Virus record (IMG/VR): IMGVR_UViG_3300022868_000009
Span: 124,001-188,000 of that record
Reading direction: 5' to 3' (one strand)
Length of the DNA: 64,000 bases
Shown here: positions 10,669-41,911 of the stretch, one piece after another
Position numbering within the stretch: the first letter of the stretch is position 1
Layout: every line of letters starts with the position of its first letter
Position numbers and translations under genes: made by a program
The notes under the pieces: generated by a model
What the model was told of the DNA's origin: nothing
What the model saw: only the letters and a program-made list of their open reading frames with translations
The model's database searches: none

Positions 10669-11655
10669 ATGAAAAAAGAAATATCTGATTATATTATATG
10701 TAAAGTATGTGGTGAAAAAGTAAGAAGAATTTATGGTGCACATTTAAAGAAACATGGATTAACAAGCAAAGAATATAAAGAAATGTTTCCAGATGAACCA
10801 TTAACAACAAAAAATGATAATTTAAAAACAAGTAAAAATTCAGGATTGCATATGAAACAAGAAAAATATAAGAAAATGTTTTCTGAAAAAATAAAAGGAG
10901 AAAAAAATCCAAATCATAAAACAAAAACTACTGAAAAAGACAGGAAATCAAGAAGTCCATTTTCAAAAGATTTTAAAAAATATAAAAATGAACAAGAATT
11001 AATAGAATTTAGAGAAGAAGCATTAAAAGATAGAAAACACACAACTAGATTAGATTATTATTTAAAACAAGGGCTTGATATGGAAACATCCAAAAAAATG
11101 TTGAAAAAAAGACAAACAACATTTACTTTAGATATTTGTGTAGAAAAATATGGCAAAGAAAAAGGTATAGTAATTTGGAAAAATAGACAAGTAAAATGGC
11201 AAGAAAATTTATTATCTAATGGTAATTTAAAATGTGGATATTCTAAAATAAGTCAAGAACTGTTCTATGGTATATTAGAATATTATGATTATGAAAATAA
11301 AAAAGATATTTATTTTGCTACAAAAAATCAAGAATTTTTCATATCCAAAAAAGGAACAGACACAGATCCACGAATTTTTTTACAATACGATTTTTGTGAC
11401 ATGAAATCAAAAAAGATAATAGAATATAACGGTGATAGATATCATGCAAATCCGAAGATATATGAATCAAAAGACAATCCACATCCATTTAGAAAAAATA
11501 TAACATCACAAGAAATTTGGAATAAAGATAAAGAGAAAACAAGGATAGCGCAACAGGAAGGTTTTGATGTTTTAACTATATGGGATAGTGATTATAAAAA
11601 AGAAAAAGAAAAAATTATTCAGAAATGTCTGAATTTTTTAAATTTAAAAATATGA
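10669..11655 (+). CDS. Free-standing endonuclease between split-intein halves
   Basis: CKVC..HLKKHG zinc finger; YDFCD..IIEYNGDRYHANP..LTIWDS; paralog of 4617..5789. Confidence 0.8.
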   Translation: MKKEISDYIICKVCGEKVRRIYGAHLKKHGLTSKEYKEMFPDEPLTTKNDNLKTSKNSGLHMKQEKYKKMFSEKIKGEKNPNHKTKTTEKDRKSRSPFSKDFKKYKNEQELIEFREEALKDRKHTTRLDYYLKQGLDMETSKKMLKKRQTTFTLDICVEKYGKEKGIVIWKNRQVKWQENLLSNGNLKCGYSKISQELFYGILEYYDYENKKDIYFATKNQEFFISKKGTDTDPRIFLQYDFCDMKSKKIIEYNGDRYHANPKIYESKDNPHPFRKNITSQEIWNKDKEKTRIAQQEGFDVLTIWDSDYKKEKEKIIQKCLNFLNLKI

Positions 11656-13952
11656 AAGTAACAATTAAACATATTATTATATTTCTCATTCAATTAATTG
11701 AATATTATGAATTTAGAAATATTGATAAAGATGAAAATAAACCAAATAAAAAGATAGTAGATATTATACCAATAAATAAATATGTAAAAACTGACTATGG
11801 TAATACACCTGTTTCTGAAATAGTTAGAACAATACCATTACAGAGATATGAATTATTATTAGAAAATGATGATAAAATTGAATGCGCAGACACACATATA
11901 ATATATTGTAAAAATCATACTCCAAAATTAGTTTTAGATTTAACCGAAAATGATGAAGTTATTACAATATCTGGACTATCAAAAATCAAACATTTTAAAA
12001 AACTAAGAGGAAAATTATCAATGTTTGATTTAACTATTGATGGACCAGAACCAAGTTATTACACAAATAATATATTATCACATAATACAGTATCAGCTGC
12101 AATTGTTATTCTTCATTTTGTATTATTTAATAATGATAAAGGTTGTATGGTTGTTGCAAATAAAGGAACTACAGTTATAGAAATTATTGATAAAATAAAA
12201 TCTATTTATAAACATTTACCATTCTTCTTAAAAAGAGGTGTAATTAACTGGAATCAAAAATCTATAACATTTGATAATGGTTGTAGAATAAAATCAGAAA
12301 ATAGAACTAAAGAACCTGCTATTGGTTTTACAATCGACCTTTTGTATTTTGATGAGTTTGCAAAAGTACCATCTAACATAATTAGACCCTATTATGGATC
12401 CGCTGTTCCAACAGTATCATCAATCAAAAATTCAAAAATTATAATAACATCTACCCCAGATGGTTATAATTTATTCTACGAATTATTAACTGGTGCAGAA
12501 AAAGCCGAAGGAGATAAAGATAAGAACACATATGAATCCATGAGAGTATATTGGTGGCAAGTTAAAGGTAGAAGAGATACTAAACTTTATTTTAATAAAA
12601 AAATGTTATCTAAATATGGTGTTAAGGAAAGAGAAATTCTTCAAGAACTAGAATTATATGGATACACAATAACAAAAAGAAAAGAGGGTGAAAAATTAGT
12701 TCATATCATAGCATTTGATGAAGATAACGAAAAAACACACTTAGAAAAAATAAGATCAATAAGATTATTTGATAAATTACCTTTGGTTGAAATATGTAAT
12801 GTTACTAATTGGCAAGAAGAAGAAACTAAATTAGTTGGTGGTGAATCAATCTTCAAACAAGAATATGATATTCAATTTATAACAGGTGATAAGTTATTAT
12901 TTGATAGTATAACATTAGAAAGAATACAGAATGCTACAGAAAAATTTGAACATATTCCAATTCCTAATTTTGATAAAAGATTAGCCTTACCTTATGATAA
13001 ATTAGAATTTATTAAAGATAGACCAGATTTATTTGAGATAGAAGAAGTTAAAAAATATCATATGATGTTTTCTATTGATTTAGCTGAAGGTTTAGGTAGT
13101 GATTACACAGTTTTAAATATATTTAGATTATTACCAAAAGACAAAGTTATAATAGAAAAGAACAAACAGAAATTTACAAACATTTATGACTATTTCAAAC
13201 TAGAACAAGTTGGATTTTTTCATTGTAATTACTATTCAGTTAAAGAATTTGCACATTTATTGTATATGATTGCATATGAAATGTTTGATCCTGAAAAATG
13301 TAAAATATCTTTAGAATATAATACTTATGGTGGAGAATTATTAGCACATTTACCAAATGTATTTGAAGGTGATAATGATTATTTTGATGCCACATTTATT
13401 AGAACAAAACACAACCAAAATGATAAATATAGAAAAAAAGGTTTAAAAATAACAAAAGGCAATAAAGTTAAACTTGTTATAAAAGATTATCAAGATGCTA
13501 TTAAAAAACATAGTATAATAGTACATAATGCATTAAATATACTTGAAATGAAAGTTTTTAGTAAAAGAGAAACACCTTCTGGTGATTTTACATACCAATC
13601 AGAAACAGGAAATGATGATACCGTAATGTCATTAGTTAATTTAAGTGCTAGTTTAACATCAGTCCAATTCAAAGATATTGTTGATGATTATATTGCAACA
13701 GTACTAAATGATGAAGATAGAAGAATGATTGAAACAAATGTATCAGAATTTAGTGATGAAACTGTAGATTATAGTTCAGCTATATCAAGTTACAAAAAAG
13801 TATATCTAGATAAATCTAAAAAACCTGGAGTTGGAAATAGTTTTAAATCAAGTCCGTTCGAACAACCAAATCCTTACCAAAAAAAAGGAAATCCATTTGA
13901 AAATAATCCATTTGGTAAAGGTACAACTGGTGTTAGTCCTTTCGGAAAATAA
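11625..13952 (+). CDS. Terminase large subunit C-terminal fragment fused to long C-intein (probable start 11652; intein ends 12086)
   Basis: CADTH block B, YYTNNILSHN/TVSAA; Walker B LLYFDEFA, ITSTPDG, nuclease DLAEGLGSD and NDD. Confidence 0.9.
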   Translation: MSEFFKFKNMKVTIKHIIIFLIQLIEYYEFRNIDKDENKPNKKIVDIIPINKYVKTDYGNTPVSEIVRTIPLQRYELLLENDDKIECADTHIIYCKNHTPKLVLDLTENDEVITISGLSKIKHFKKLRGKLSMFDLTIDGPEPSYYTNNILSHNTVSAAIVILHFVLFNNDKGCMVVANKGTTVIEIIDKIKSIYKHLPFFLKRGVINWNQKSITFDNGCRIKSENRTKEPAIGFTIDLLYFDEFAKVPSNIIRPYYGSAVPTVSSIKNSKIIITSTPDGYNLFYELLTGAEKAEGDKDKNTYESMRVYWWQVKGRRDTKLYFNKKMLSKYGVKEREILQELELYGYTITKRKEGEKLVHIIAFDEDNEKTHLEKIRSIRLFDKLPLVEICNVTNWQEEETKLVGGESIFKQEYDIQFITGDKLLFDSITLERIQNATEKFEHIPIPNFDKRLALPYDKLEFIKDRPDLFEIEEVKKYHMMFSIDLAEGLGSDYTVLNIFRLLPKDKVIIEKNKQKFTNIYDYFKLEQVGFFHCNYYSVKEFAHLLYMIAYEMFDPEKCKISLEYNTYGGELLAHLPNVFEGDNDYFDATFIRTKHNQNDKYRKKGLKITKGNKVKLVIKDYQDAIKKHSIIVHNALNILEMKVFSKRETPSGDFTYQSETGNDDTVMSLVNLSASLTSVQFKDIVDDYIATVLNDEDRRMIETNVSEFSDETVDYSSAISSYKKVYLDKSKKPGVGNSFKSSPFEQPNPYQKKGNPFENNPFGKGTTGVSPFGK

Positions 13953-14000: not shown

Positions 14001-14789
14001 ATGGCTAAAAGGATTGTAACAAAAAACAATGTTTTTAAAATGAATGTTAATGAACAATTACCACTCTTTTTAAAAATGATTCAAGATTTAACTCAAATAG
14101 ATGATAGAATCTTATTTAAATTTAATAATGATAAATTATTAATATATAGCATGGTTGGTCAAGATACTAATATACATGCATTTAAATCACATATTATAGA
14201 TATGTGTGAAATATTTTCACTTGTTAAAAATGAATTTGAAACAGATATTAAATATACTGTAAAAAATGCCAAGAAATTTTTCAAAAGTATCCAAGGGTTA
14301 ATAAATTACAAAGAAGATATTGATTTAAAATTAGTTTATAATGAAGATAATTTTGGAGAAAAATTAATGATTAAAAATAGTATTTATAAAAGAGAATTTG
14401 CTGGAGATGATCCAACAGTTTTCAAAAAAGATATTAATATTGAAGCCATTAATGATGCCATGGATACAGATTTATCATCATTTTCTTTTAAATTAACAAA
14501 AGATAAATATGACCATATTAAAAAGGAATCTGGAATTGATACAGAAAATGAAATTTATTTCTTAAATGTTCGTGACGGTGCCGTTTCATTAGGAGAAAAT
14601 TCATGGGAATTAAAGGTGGATGAAGGAGTAGAAACAATAGATAGTACAATAAGTTTTCCTAAAAAATACTTTAATAGTATTAATTTTGATAAAGATATAG
14701 ATGAATTAACTATATGGGTTTTTGATATGTTTATATTAGTAATAGGAGAAAACACAAATTTAATGATATCAATAGAATTAACAATTTAA
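14001..14789 (+). CDS. Probable sliding clamp (gp45/PCNA-like)
   Basis: 262 aa, acidic, alternating beta/alpha pattern, T4-like context; no diagnostic motif recognised. Confidence 0.45.
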   Translation: MAKRIVTKNNVFKMNVNEQLPLFLKMIQDLTQIDDRILFKFNNDKLLIYSMVGQDTNIHAFKSHIIDMCEIFSLVKNEFETDIKYTVKNAKKFFKSIQGLINYKEDIDLKLVYNEDNFGEKLMIKNSIYKREFAGDDPTVFKKDINIEAINDAMDTDLSSFSFKLTKDKYDHIKKESGIDTENEIYFLNVRDGAVSLGENSWELKVDEGVETIDSTISFPKKYFNSINFDKDIDELTIWVFDMFILVIGENTNLMISIELTI

Positions 14790-14885
14790 AGTAAAAATTA
14801 ATAATAAATTTTAATCTTTTAGAAAAATTCCATATATTTGTATTAGTTAAAATTAATATATAAATAAAAATAAAAAATAGAAATT

Positions 14886-15233
14886 ATGACGTAGAACAAA
14901 AAACTTTATGTAATTACAAGAAATGACTTACCATCCGGTACAAAAGCCGTTCAGGCAGGTCACAGTTTAGCTCAGTTCATCCTCGAACACTTAGAAATAT
15001 CACAACTGTGGCACAAAGAATCCCAGTATTTAATTTATTTATCAATAATTGATGAAAATGCTTTATTGCGTTTAATTGAAAAATGCAATAAATGTAATCT
15101 TAATATATCCGTATTTAAAGAACCAGATATAAATAATGAGATAACATCTATTACAATTGAGCCAGGAAAAAAATCTAAGCGATTAGTTGGTCATTTACCA
15201 TTATTATTTAAAAAAGAAAGGATAACAGTATGA
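14886..15233 (+). CDS. Pth2-family peptidyl-tRNA hydrolase-like protein with in-frame TAG at codon 3 (absent from ORF track)
   Basis: MT*NKKLYVITRNDLPSGTKAVQAGHSLAQF...FKEPDINNEITSITIEP...HLPLL; TGA overlaps the next ATG. Confidence 0.75.
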
Positions 15234-15646
15234 AAACATTAGAAAAAGAAGAATACACAGCAATATTTAATGGATATGAAACATTATTATTTAAATTAGG
15301 AAAGTTAACAAGTATCTTACATGAAACAGATCCTGAAAATTATGTAGAAATGACAAATATATCAGATATTGATTATTATACTAGAAAAAATGATATTAGA
15401 TACATAGAATTGACTGGAGAAGAATATCATGTTGGTTGTGGTGATTATGAAAATGATTATTGTGAGTTTCCTGAAGAATGGATCTGGACAGACCAAGATG
15501 ATGTGGTGAAAATTGTAATAGAAAAAAGAATTGAAAGAGAAGAATTGAAAAAAAGGGAAAAAGAATCACACGAAGAAAAGAAACAAATAGAATTAGAAAA
15601 CAAAGAACTAGAATTATTAAAAAAATTAAAAACAAAATATGAATAA
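15230..15646 (+). CDS. Hypothetical protein
   Basis: ATGA-coupled to the Pth2-like ORF. Confidence 0.65.
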   Translation: MKTLEKEEYTAIFNGYETLLFKLGKLTSILHETDPENYVEMTNISDIDYYTRKNDIRYIELTGEEYHVGCGDYENDYCEFPEEWIWTDQDDVVKIVIEKRIEREELKKREKESHEEKKQIELENKELELLKKLKTKYE

Positions 15647-16010
15647 CTTTAAAAATAAATATGAACGATTACAATTCAACCTTGAAAACCAAGGCTGGGG
15701 TAAAATGAAATGTTTTGGGAACTCAATGTTACCAAAATTAGATAACCCAACAATGAATACATATATTCCACAAGATGATTATGAAGTTGGTGATATAGTA
15801 TTCTGTAAAGTAAAAGGGAAATTTATAGATTCTCATTTAATTACACAGATAAATGATAAAAAAGGCTATATGATTAGTAATAACAAAGGACATCAAAATG
15901 GATGGAGTAAACGAATTTTTGGTCGTGTAGTTAGAGCCGTTAATGAAAGTAAAGATGAGAAATGGTTTAATTTCACAGAAGAAAAATTAAATAACATAAC
16001 TAAAAAATAA
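15639..16010 (+). CDS. S24/S26 peptidase-like protein
   Basis: GNSMLPKL, GDIVFCKV, SHLI (Ser/His arrangement of S26-type peptidases). Confidence 0.6.
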   Translation: MNNFKNKYERLQFNLENQGWGKMKCFGNSMLPKLDNPTMNTYIPQDDYEVGDIVFCKVKGKFIDSHLITQINDKKGYMISNNKGHQNGWSKRIFGRVVRAVNESKDEKWFNFTEEKLNNITKK

Positions 16011-16051
16011 AAGGAGATAATATGAAATAGATTATTAGAGGACCCACGTAA
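16011..16051 (+). other. SD-led minigene MK*IIRGPT* with TAG at codon 3
   Basis: AAGGAG (16011-16016) ataat ATG AAA TAG ATT ATT AGA GGA CCC ACG TAA. Confidence 0.55.
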
Positions 16052-16103
16052 GTTGTTGTCAACACAAAAATTTAGTAAAACTAACAAAAATTAATTAATA
16101 ACA

Positions 16104-16598
16104 ATGTTTAAAAAAATAAAAAATATTATGAAAACAGAAACAATGACAACAACAGAAATTAACAAAGATTCACATCATGCAACAGATTTACAAACTAGAT
16201 TTGAAGTATTATTAGAAGAAATTAAAGATTTTCTTAATAAAACACATATTGAAAAAAATGATAAACCAATAATTAACACAGTTTATCAATTTACAGGTGA
16301 TCTTTCAAAATTAAAACCAAAAGTACAACACTTAAATAATGCAGGTATTTGTAGAAGAAGAGTTTTGAAAAGAATGTTAAGAAAAGTTGAACATAAAATG
16401 TCTTTAATAAACATTAATAGATTATTTCACTTTATTGAAGTTTATATTATAGAAAAGAAATCTACTGTAAAAGTAACTTGTGAAAAAGATAGAAAAATTC
16501 AAATGTTAAGAAAAGAATGGAAAAAATTACAATCTAAATCAGATTTAGCTTTAAAAGAGTATAAAGAAGAAAAAGGTGATTTCTACAAACAAATATAA
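16104..16598 (+). CDS. Hypothetical basic protein
   Basis: ORF ending KEEKGDFYK. Confidence 0.65.
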   Translation: MFKKIKNIMKTETMTTTEINKDSHHATDLQTRFEVLLEEIKDFLNKTHIEKNDKPIINTVYQFTGDLSKLKPKVQHLNNAGICRRRVLKRMLRKVEHKMSLININRLFHFIEVYIIEKKSTVKVTCEKDRKIQMLRKEWKKLQSKSDLALKEYKEEKGDFYKQI

Positions 16599-16628
16599 AC
16601 AAAAATAGTGCTGTTTTCAGCACTAATT

Positions 16629-16700
16629 GGTCCCGTAGCTCAGTGGAAGAGCAGAAGCTTCTAACCCTTTGTGTCGCTGGTTCAAATCCAGCCGGGACCG
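16629..16700 (+). tRNA. tRNA with CUA anticodon in canonical register (putative amber suppressor; Arg-TCT only if read out of register)
   Basis: GGTCCCG/CGGGACC, GCTC/GAGC, A26, GAAGC-TTCTAAC-CCTTT, GTGTC, GCTGG-TTCAAAT-CCAGC, G73. Confidence 0.75.
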
Positions 16701-17003
16701 CTATAACCTCATTATATTGGTTGTTCTATTATACTTAATAGTTTCTTTTTGTCTATTTACCCAATTAATTAATTCAGACTTAATTTCTTTATATCTTTCT
16801 TCTGTCATTTTATCATCATAAAACTCACCTTGTTCAATTTGATGATCATCAGATAACCAAAAATCGGAAACTAACTCATTTAATGTCTCCTCTAATTGTC
16901 TAAAATTAGTTTCAACACCATTCAAATAATATTTCTTTTGATTTACAGCCCATTCTTCATCTTCTTGAGTTACATTTTCATTATATTTCTTTAAATGTCT
17001 CAT
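16701..17003 (-). CDS. Putative capsid-internal protein
   Basis: MRHLKKYNE N-terminus. Confidence 0.6.
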   Translation of the reverse strand: MRHLKKYNENVTQEDEEWAVNQKKYYLNGVETNFRQLEETLNELVSDFWLSDDHQIEQGEFYDDKMTEERYKEIKSELINWVNRQKETIKYNRTTNIMRL

Positions 17004-17305
17004 TAAAAAGTATTTTTTATTACTCTACCAAATGGTTCTTTTTTATCAGTTGAATTGTACCAATTAAATAGATCACTCATATATTGAATAGTAAATTGAT
17101 TGATCAAATCAGCCCACTTTATACCTATATCAAATCCTTTTAAAAAACCATATTTCTTTTTAAGTTCTTGTAATTCAAAAAAAATATCATCAAAATCCAT
17201 ATTATCAGATAACATTTTAGAGATTATATCTAATTTTTCTTCTACTTTTTTCTCACTCTTTTCATCAAGATCAAAATTTTCTTTAAATGTTTTTAAATGT
17301 TTCAT
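17003..17305 (-). CDS. Putative capsid-internal protein
   Basis: MKHLKTFKE N-terminus. Confidence 0.6.
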   Translation of the reverse strand: MKHLKTFKENFDLDEKSEKKVEEKLDIISKMLSDNMDFDDIFFELQELKKKYGFLKGFDIGIKWADLINQFTIQYMSDLFNWYNSTDKKEPFGRVIKNTF

Positions 17306-17320
17306 TATTTTTCATTATTT

Positions 17321-17560
17321 TTATAGAGTTGTACCTATTAACAATCCGCTTAGAAATATTAATATATTAGTAAGACCTAGATTATTATTATTTGTATCAA
17401 ATATAGATCGACTTTTACTATAAATAGTTATTCTACCGTCATGTCCTTGAGTCGCACCAATCGTTAAATCATAACCTCTATCATTTAACACTTTAAGTAT
17501 TAATGATATCTTTGGTTTGTCACCGTTACCATTCTCATTATATTTCTTAAGATGATTCAT
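17321..17560 (-). CDS. Putative capsid-internal protein
   Basis: MNHLKKYNE N-terminus. Confidence 0.55.
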   Translation of the reverse strand: MNHLKKYNENGNGDKPKISLILKVLNDRGYDLTIGATQGHDGRITIYSKSRSIFDTNNNNLGLTNILIFLSGLLIGTTL

Positions 17561-40528: not shown

Positions 40529-40529
40529 G

Positions 40530-40601
40530 TGGAGCCTACGGGAATCGAACCCGTGTCTTCTGAGTGCAAGTCAGAAATAATAGCCTCTATACGAAGGTCC
40601 C
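40530..40601 (-). tRNA. tRNA-Ala(TGC)
   Basis: TCTGA-CTTGCAC-TCAGA; G3:U70; T-arm ACGGG-TTCGATT-CCCGT. Confidence 0.85.
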
Positions 40602-40608
40602 ATTTTTG

Positions 40609-40682
40609 TACTCCCGATTGGACTCGAACCAACAACTTCTGCCATGTAACGGCAGCACTCTACGCAATTGAGCTACAGGAGC
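40609..40682 (-). tRNA. tRNA-Val(TAC)
   Basis: CTGCC-GTTACAT-GGCAG; full cloverleaf. Confidence 0.85.
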
Positions 40683-40687
40683 GTTTG

Positions 40688-40761
40688 TAGTCTCGATGAG
40701 ATTCGAACTCATGACCTCTTGCACGTCAAGCAAACACTCTAACCAACTGAGCTACGAAACT
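40688..40761 (-). tRNA. tRNA-Val(GAC)
   Basis: TTTGC-TTGACGT-GCAAG; full cloverleaf. Confidence 0.85.
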
Positions 40762-40765
40762 ATAG

Positions 40766-40836
40766 TACTCTCGAAGGGACTCGAACCCCCACTAAGGGTT
40801 TAGAAGACCCTTGTGCATCCATTACACCACGAAAGC
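40766..40836 (-). tRNA. tRNA-Arg(TCT)
   Basis: AGGGT-CTTCTAA-ACCCT; full cloverleaf. Confidence 0.85.
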
Positions 40837-40837
40837 A

Positions 40838-41575
40838 TTAACACATTTTCAATTTTTTAATTATATCACTAATAGTGCCTTTTGAAGCACAAAAATATTC
40901 AGCAATTTTAACTTGTTTAATATTTTGATTAAAATACATATCATAAACTTTTTCTCTATCAATTTTTGGTTGTTTATATTTCAAATTATTAGATTTTTCT
41001 ATAATTTCATCAAGATTTTCGTAGAAAAATTTTGAATCTGTATGTTTTATTGTGTGACAATTTCTACATATTATTTTACATTTATCTAATTCATTTTGTA
41101 CTTTTTCACTCAAATCTTTTATACTATCAAATCTACTAGTTATATCACTTAAAATAAAATCCTTATTTCTTTCATGATGAAAATTTAATGACGAATTACA
41201 TTTATTATATCCACATATATAACATTTATCATCACCTAAATATTTTAAATAAATGTGTTTGTTGTGTCTCTTATTAGAAACTTTGCCAATTTTTTCATGT
41301 AATTCTTGATGACAATTTTGACAATATAATTCACACTTTTTTAACTCTTTCTCTATTATATTCCAGCTATAATTTCTTAAAACATTTAATGATTCTTTTT
41401 TATCATCTATATGATGAAAACACAATTTTAATATATTATCTTCACCACACATTTTACAAGAACCACCAAGTAATTTAACTGCTTTGTACTTTTTAGCAAA
41501 AACTAATATTTTTGTTGATAATTTTTTCATGTTCGAGGTTTTAATTTTATATATTAAAATTAAAACCTCGAACAT
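40838..41575 (-). CDS. Tandem-HNH endonuclease with C-terminal HTH, inserted in the tRNA array (probable start 41530)
   Basis: Two CxxCG..LxFHH..CxxxCxNCH units. Confidence 0.8.
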   Translation of the reverse strand: MFEVLILIYKIKTSNMKKLSTKILVFAKKYKAVKLLGGSCKMCGEDNILKLCFHHIDDKKESLNVLRNYSWNIIEKELKKCELYCQNCHQELHEKIGKVSNKRHNKHIYLKYLGDDKCYICGYNKCNSSLNFHHERNKDFILSDITSRFDSIKDLSEKVQNELDKCKIICRNCHTIKHTDSKFFYENLDEIIEKSNNLKYKQPKIDREKVYDMYFNQNIKQVKIAEYFCASKGTISDIIKKLKMC

Positions 41576-41579
41576 GAAA
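41525..41579. repeat. Perfect 25-bp inverted repeat covering the HNH start codon and promoter motif
   Basis: tttcatgttcgaggttttaatttta-tatat-taaaattaaaacctcgaacatgaaa. Confidence 0.9.
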
Positions 41580-41583
41580 TTTG

Positions 41584-41657
41584 AGCGAATGAACGGATTC
41601 GAACCGTCACCTCAACTTTGGAAGAGTTATATGCTAACCATTAAACACCACATTCGC
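41584..41657 (-). tRNA. tRNA-Gly(TCC)
   Basis: GCGAATG/CATTCGC, U73, TAACT-CTTCCAA-AGTTG. Confidence 0.85.
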
Positions 41658-41667
41658 TTATTTCTTG

Positions 41668-41740
41668 ATCCCCCTGTCGGAATCGAGCCGACTTCCCCGA
41701 TTTACAAGACCGGACATAATCCATTAAATGCTTAGGAGGA
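41668..41740 (-). tRNA. tRNA-Thr(TGT)
   Basis: CCGGT-CTTGTAA-ATCGG; TCCTCCT/AGGGGGA acceptor stem. Confidence 0.8.
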
Positions 41741-41748
41741 ATATATAG

Positions 41749-41828
41749 AACCCCAAGTGGGACTCGAACCCACATTTTCAATTCCAATTACCGATAACTG
41801 TTTCGAAGACAGAACGGATTACTGAGGT
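41749..41828 (-). tRNA. Atypical D-armless tRNA-like RNA, TCG (Arg) anticodon loop
   Basis: ACCTCAG/TTGGGGT acceptor, CTGT-CTTCGAA-ACAG, long variable region, GTGGG-TTCGAGT-CCCAC. Confidence 0.65.
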
Positions 41829-41837
41829 ATTTATTTG

Positions 41838-41911
41838 TATAAGCGGTGAGAGTCGAACTCACAATAATCCTCAGTCCAAGTGAGGCAACCACGCCAATGG
41901 ATCGCGCCTAT
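41838..41911 (-). tRNA. tRNA-Pro(TGG), atypical acceptor stem
   Basis: CCTCA-CTTGGAC-TGAGG; ATAGGCG/CGCTTAT; GTGAG-TTCGACT-CTCAC. Confidence 0.75.

Follow-up and report, generated by a model that had tools for sequence, protein, structure and literature searches.

A stop-codon-gated leader in front of phage suppressor tRNA genes as a possible sensor of suppression

In translational attenuation, as known for the ermC, ermB, cat and cmlA leader peptides, a ribosome stalled in a short Shine-Dalgarno (SD)-led leader ORF covers one arm of a helix that masks the initiation region of the next gene, and the stall needs an antibiotic in the exit tunnel. In the trpL, hisL and pheL attenuators the position of a ribosome in the leader ORF reports the availability of a particular charged tRNA; these leaders sense scarcity of a tRNA at sense codons and act on a transcription terminator. 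In prfB (RF2) an early in-frame stop codon within CUU UGA C serves as a gauge of how that stop is being decoded, and a +1 frameshift results when release is slow. SecM, ApdA and ApdP (RAGP, RAPP) and TnaC arrest at Pro codons or at a Pro-stop junction, which remodels the downstream mRNA to switch on the next gene. The lambda bar and synthetic minigenes consist of an SD, AUG, one sense codon and a stop. In engineered switches (unnatural-amino-acid control of tna/trp leaders; reviewed in PMC6412442, section 6), a UAG placed in a leader peptide makes downstream expression depend on a tRNA(CUA), and this man-made system acts through Rho-dependent transcription termination.

How phages that carry suppressor tRNAs time and control the change in stop-codon meaning is an open question. 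Genome-wide recoding of late genes was described, and suppressor tRNAs and in-frame stops were proposed as regulators of expression (Borges et al., bioRxiv 10.1101/2021.08.26.457843), but that work does not mention a leader ORF, Pth or an RF1 frameshift. In the open literature that could be searched we found no description of a stop-gated leader, a stop-gated Pth2 or an RF1 frameshift in phages, and no cis-regulatory device is named there. Here we analysed a minute ORF in a window of 64,000 nt (positions 124,001 to 188,000 of IMG/VR record IMGVR_UViG_3300022868_000009). We conclude that it is one divergent copy of a short leader that many phages place in front of their stop-codon-reading tRNA gene, apparently to turn on the next gene only once that tRNA is working.

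The leader and its genomic context

The original prediction described one of the few clear SD sites in the window, followed by a two-codon ORF that is extended to nine codons on readthrough, and the sequence confirms this description (Table 1). The SD directly follows the stop codon of an upstream ORF of 123 aa and is separated from the ATG by a 5-nt spacer. With TAG read as sense the product is MKQIIRGPT. An amber-suppressor tRNA(CUA) lies about 600 nt downstream of the leader, and 31 nt after the stop of the intervening ORF (ORF164). It was identified by ARAGORN and by Rfam (60.9 bits), whereas its amino-acid identity could not be resolved by comparison with the other tRNAs of the phage.

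Table 1. Positions of the leader, of its neighbours and of further features. Positions refer to the window unless the genome or another locus (L followed by a number) is named.
Feature	Position	Strand	Remarks
Terminase large subunit	11625-13952		
Pth2-family gene	14886-15233	+	ATG ACG TAG (14892-14894), then the full PTH2 domain; no canonical start after the TAG until codon 61
Stop of the 123-aa ORF	16008-16010	+	TAA
SD of the leader	16011-16016	+	AAGGAG
Start, codon 2 and gating amber codon	16022-16030	+	ATG 16022-24, AAA 16025-27, TAG 16028-30
Readthrough extension and terminal stop	16031-16051	+	ATT ATT AGA GGA CCC ACG 16031-48 (I-I-R-G-P-T), TAA 16049-51
5' arm of the helix	16052-16061	+	GTTGTTGTCA; starts at the first base after the terminal stop
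3' arm of the helix	16144-16153	+	TGACAACAAC; covers the UG of ATG 16143-16145 and the next 8 nt
ORF164	16104-16598	+	longest frame 164 aa from ATG 16104; homology-supported start ATG 16143 (151 aa, MTTTEINK...)
In-frame ATGs in the loop	16104, 16128	+	upstream of the masked ATG 16143
Hairpin between ORF164 stop and tRNA	16606-16625		8 bp, AGTGCTG-TTTT-CAGCACT core
tRNA(CUA)	16629-16701	+	amber suppressor
Convergent genes	17003->16701	-	
Cluster of seven tRNA genes	40529-41911	-	Ala, Val x2, Arg, Gly, Thr and Pro
RF1-type gene (outside the window)	genome 34554-35233; locus L099 755-1433	-	+1 shift site TGT CTT TAG CGG
GC-richer stretch (outside the window)	genome 112100-113300; locus L100		about 1.2 kb without ORFs
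Second tRNA(CUA) (outside the window)	genome 112614-112688		AT-rich acceptor stem
Region of SD-led genes (outside the window)	genome about 306000-322200	+	about 10 genes
ORF directly behind the leader in L082	L082 4131-4685	-	Pth2-like domain at residues 86-176
Leaders without SD	L015 2836, L038 5387, L046 5342, L049 731		TAG at codon 4

The window is part of a single contig of 344,634 bp with 25% GC and 35 tRNA genes, two of which have the anticodon CUA. The presence of a terminase large subunit identifies it as a jumbo phage. Its DNA is found in salt-lake and marine metagenomes, while no RNA run contains it. A distant DNA search of GenBank phages gave only two short hits to the 123-aa ORF in huge uncultured phages. 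General recoding of TAG was rejected: TAG ends 29 of 400 long ORFs, no long ORF has an internal TAG, and all TAGs in extended frames lie at true ends or upstream of ordinary starts, with the exception of Pth2. The genome is thus otherwise standard-code, and the TAG of the leader is not just a routine sense codon. Most relatives' 10-kb neighbourhoods also look standard-code.

Genes of this phage do not use SD sequences. Upstream regions are A-rich, and a 4-mer SD motif was found for 4.7% of 379 long ORFs compared to 3.8% of random positions. Only 3 of the 379 long ORFs have AAGGAG. The genome contains 77 AAGGAG sites on both strands, 17 of them in the window, and the site of the leader is the only intergenic one in the window with an ATG at good spacing. 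The SD of the leader is therefore exceptional. Only one part of the genome, outside the window and interspersed with tRNA genes, has genes with strong SD sites (TAAAAAAGGAG-N6-9-ATG), and it may be a module of different origin or of different expression timing.

We also searched positions 14500-17500 for known RNA families or riboswitches, but Rfam finds only the tRNA. Promoter-like sites were at the level of shuffled sequence (21 found, 18.6 expected). The only terminator-like hairpin, located between ORF164 and the tRNA, scores as an intrinsic terminator for the minus strand only, where convergent genes run; on the plus strand it could be a processing signal 5' of the tRNA.

Conservation of the leader and its association with suppressor tRNAs

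In order to find out whether the element is conserved, we collected relatives through the flanking 123-aa ORF, through the Pth2 gene (61 loci) and through a DNA pattern scan of IMG/VR (29 stretches). They carry the same small ORF in the same place, between a homolog of the 123-aa ORF or of Pth2 and a tRNA(CUA), and a GAAAGGAGG-type SD is conserved in most of them. In total, 35 distinct leaders were obtained. The TAG is at codon 3 in 30, at codon 4 in 4 and at codon 5 in 1 of them, and is followed by a purine in 33. The TAG is followed by 4-7 sense codons, never fewer than 4, and the terminal stop is TAA in 27 and TGA in 8 cases. The last codon encodes Pro in 34 of 35 leaders (CCA 13, CCT 13, CCG 4, CCC 4), the codon at -2 encodes Pro in 31, and the codon at -3 encodes Lys or Arg in 32, using AAA, AAG, AGA, AGG, CGC and CGA. 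In contrast, 19 different codons occur at position 2. Typical forms are MS-stop-IKPP-stop, MF-stop-IKPP-stop, MN-stop-RKPP-stop (in L003, the nearest relative of the window) and MP-stop-VRPP-stop. A clade of leaders lacks an SD and has the form M-x-H-TAG-I/V-x-R/L-P-P-stop, which fits hosts that initiate without SD; one of these, MEH-stop-IIRPP-stop in L038, is the closest peptide to that of the window. Amino-acid conservation with free third positions downstream of the TAG shows that these codons are translated, which means that the TAG is read through. The window's own copy, ending R-G-P-T-stop, is the only leader of 35 without a terminal Pro.

Although the pattern allowed out-of-frame spacers, all 29 hits were in frame, and 26 of these had a tRNA(CUA) 430-1600 nt downstream on the same strand. 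In the loci anchored on Pth2, which are unbiased with respect to the leader, every SD-led mini-ORF of 12 codons or fewer that ends in PP-stop contains a TAG (14 of 14), and none was found on the opposite strand. However, about 40% of the Pth2-anchored loci that have a tRNA(CUA) showed no recognisable leader. As controls, the pattern with TAA as the gate gave 0 hits in IMG/VR and the pattern with TGA gave 2. The TAG pattern gave only 4 hits in 596 Gb of bacterial and archaeal genomes; none had a tRNA nearby and one was out of frame.

The most telling result is that the gating stop tracks the anticodon of the neighbouring tRNA. L058, with a tRNA(UUA), has the leader M T [TAA] V N K P P [TAG], and its Pth2 gene has TAA at codon 3. 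L067, with a tRNA(UCA), has M L [TGA] R P R P P P F S [TAA] and an in-frame TGA at codon 11 of Pth2. L109 has M K [TGA] V H K P P [TAG] with a tRNA(UCA) 435 nt downstream. The first stop is chosen to be readable by the cassette's own tRNA, and in the two opal cases the second stop is one that this tRNA cannot read. In the ochre case the terminal stop is UAG, and since classic ochre suppressors generally also read UAG by wobble, the terminal stop may be leaky there.

The helix behind the terminal stop and a proposed mechanism

The ten bases right after the terminal stop of the window's leader are complementary to the start region of ORF164 (GUUGUUGUCA:UGACAACAAC), whose homology-supported ATG is 91 nt after the leader stop. 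RNAduplex gave -14.8 kcal/mol, and no control window of the same locus does as well. The helix is present in both the MFE and the centroid fold of positions 16008-16170, although the z-score of the whole-region fold is only -1.4. Analogous helices occur in about 20 loci, with duplex energies of -10 to -22 kcal/mol against control means of -4 to -10, better than 98% or more of same-locus controls in most loci. They start -3 to +4 nt (mostly 0 to +2) from the end of the terminal stop, but their sequences differ between lineages. The main clade has GUUUCCAU:AUGGAAAC (-11 to -15 kcal/mol, better than 98% or more of controls). In L079, L098, L084 and L080, AAUUCUCC:GGAGAAUU or a similar pairing masks the SD of the next ORF, and in L012, L052 and L090 an 18-nt helix reaches to +17 of the ORF (-18 to -22 kcal/mol). 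Compared with L003, the helix of the window shows two double compensatory changes and one single change. Within the main clade the helix is largely conserved in sequence, with mostly G-U changes, so that the covariation argument rests on comparisons between clades, made without formal pair counting because the spacers are not alignable. A few divergent leaders (L008/L069, L086) show no convincing helix to the next start.

These data, all of them computational, are best explained by a translational attenuator of the ermC type whose input is nonsense suppression, a reading that we regard as probable. The following steps are inferred from anatomy and comparison. Ribosomes load efficiently on the strong SD and translate Met-Lys. 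Without active suppressor tRNA, RF1 terminates at the UAG or the dipeptidyl-tRNA drops off; in the window this ribosome sits 23 nt upstream of the helix (15 nt or more across the leaders), which stays closed and masks the start of the next ORF. When charged tRNA(CUA) is present, the ribosome reads through to the second stop, and the purine after the UAG is a context that generally favours suppressors over RF1. In relatives the second stop is preceded by K/R-Pro-Pro, a context of slow peptide-bond formation and slow release (EF-P-dependent Pro-Pro motifs, and pausing at termination caused by C-terminal Pro-Pro; cited in PMC6412442, refs 79-81). The ribosome would pause with the stop in its A site and cover the roughly 10 nt that form the 5' arm, which frees the AUG region of ORF164 for initiation. 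ORF164 would therefore become a suppression-dependent product, as would Pth2, which uses the simpler device of the same stop codon at its codon 3. Stalling at the R-G-P-T-stop of the window's copy is unproven and its pause is probably weaker. In addition, the two in-frame ATGs in the loop could, in a genome that initiates without SD, allow helix-independent translation of a longer form.

In the erm/cat leaders an antibiotic triggers the stall, while here the ribosome must first decode a stop codon with a suppressor tRNA, and the design is a single two-arm helix with a 60-150-nt loop, not a four-segment structure. Compared to trpL, hisL and pheL, the leader senses the presence of a tRNA that reads a stop codon and appears to act on translation initiation. 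Compared to prfB, the outcome is in-frame readthrough by a dedicated tRNA. Some members of the leader family read R-K-P-P, V-R-P-P or T-R-P-P, but the literal RAGP/RAPP motif of SecM, ApdA and ApdP is absent, the leaders of 7-13 residues are too short to fill the exit tunnel, and the trigger is suppression rather than force or a ligand. The element appears to be a natural counterpart in phages of the engineered amber-codon leader switches.

The original prediction had proposed a sensor uORF controlling the ORF at 16104 or the downstream tRNA, and this is supported by the comparative evidence. Its suggestion of an arrest-like motif resembling RAGP/RAPP was a good guess for the family, whose consensus K/R-Pro-Pro-stop is of a polyproline and termination stall type, but it does not hold literally. 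Its alternative, a deliberate generator of peptidyl-tRNA, is not supported.

Alternative readings and neighbouring genes

It is possible, although we consider it unlikely, that the window's element is a relic that descends from the conserved leader but no longer works as a switch. The loss of the terminal Pro and the unmasked upstream ATGs of ORF164 support this view. On the other hand, the SD, ATG-NNN-TAG, the purine after TAG, six codons of spacing and a 10-bp helix with compensatory changes relative to L003 are all retained, and the leader is invariant in contigs from four metagenomes that contain the phage.

Somewhat more doubtful is a transcriptional output, in which a ribosome reaching or pausing at the terminal stop, or the resulting translation of ORF164, prevents Rho-type polarity and thereby controls synthesis of the co-transcribed tRNA(CUA), giving positive feedback on the suppressor. 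The order leader-ORF-tRNA and the roughly 600-nt spacing are conserved, no intrinsic terminator was found on the plus strand between the leader and the tRNA, and tnaC and the engineered amber-leader switch work this way (PMC6412442, section 6). However, there is no rut-like or terminator evidence, and the conserved helix specifically targets the start codon or the SD of the next ORF, which argues for translational control. The two outputs are not mutually exclusive, and a transcriptional output cannot be excluded.

A minigene of the bar type, generating peptidyl-tRNA by drop-off to deplete a host tRNA or to overload host Pth with the phage Pth2 as the antidote, is very unlikely. The element has the shape of the toxic minigenes and a Pth2-family gene is in the same cassette, but codon 2 is not conserved, while the 4-7 codons after the stop are conserved as amino acids, the terminal stop is fixed and the downstream helix is conserved, none of which would matter for a two-codon minigene; moreover, the sensor stop tracks the tRNA anticodon. 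Chance co-occurrence is refuted: random frames stop within about 8 codons in 25% GC DNA and several cases of AAGGAG, ATG and short ORF exist elsewhere in the genome, but the element is conserved in position, the pattern is at least 7 times more frequent in IMG/VR than in 596 Gb of prokaryote genomes, and 26 of 29 hits are associated with a tRNA(CUA).

ORF164 belongs to a family of basic, predicted helical proteins of about 140 aa with the conserved C-terminal motif YKxEKGDFYK. The start at 16143 is supported by an alignment of 17 homologs, which begin MET(T). No Pfam, PHROG or Atlas hit was obtained. The AF2 model (pLDDT 75) gave no match by Foldseek against the PDB at E<=0.001, and the best VIA-align score was Z 5.6, to generic helical bundles. 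In other lineages the leader is followed by other small ORFs and by Pth2 itself: in some (L082, L079, L091, L092, L098) the ORF directly behind the leader is, or is followed within about 300 nt by, the Pth2-like gene, and here the leader may control Pth2 directly.

The Pth2-family gene of the window matches Pfam PF01981 over profile positions 2-115/115 from residue 6 (E=1.4e-8, 35.4 bits against a gathering cutoff of 23). It can only be translated by reading the TAG at codon 3; the next canonical start is 57 codons further on, and a standard gene call gives a 55-aa fragment from TTG 15066. About 45 of about 53 distinct phage homologs (35-50% identity) have the layout M-x(0-9)-stop-x(4-11)-domain, mostly with the stop at codon 3, and the type of the stop follows the neighbouring suppressor tRNA (TAG/CUA, TAA/UUA, TGA/UCA). 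Nearly all of them lie within a few kb of a suppressor tRNA. Pth2 genes of this type are missed or truncated by standard gene callers.

Outside the window, the phage encodes a truncated RF1-type release factor with PPT and GGQ motifs, whose two parts join only by a +1 shift at CUU UAG C, the prfB-type shift site with UAG in place of UGA. This junction is conserved in four relatives (L101, L102, L103 and L105) at 49-60% identity, while L104, L106 and L107 instead have in-frame TGA codons. A 2016 review states that a UAG/RF1 counterpart of the prfB device was unknown (PMC5009743). It is about as likely as not that the stop-gated leader, the Pth2 gene gated by the same stop codon and, in this phage, the RF1 gene form a dedicated circuit that measures and sets how a stop codon is decoded in the infected cell, as the control logic of a genetic-code switch. 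As a compact natural sensor of suppression, the leader would also explain why a standard-code jumbo phage keeps suppressor tRNAs. The second tRNA(CUA) of this phage sits inside a GC-richer stretch without ORFs that looks structured, where Rfam finds only the tRNAs at gathering threshold, and a further cluster of seven tRNA genes is present within the window.
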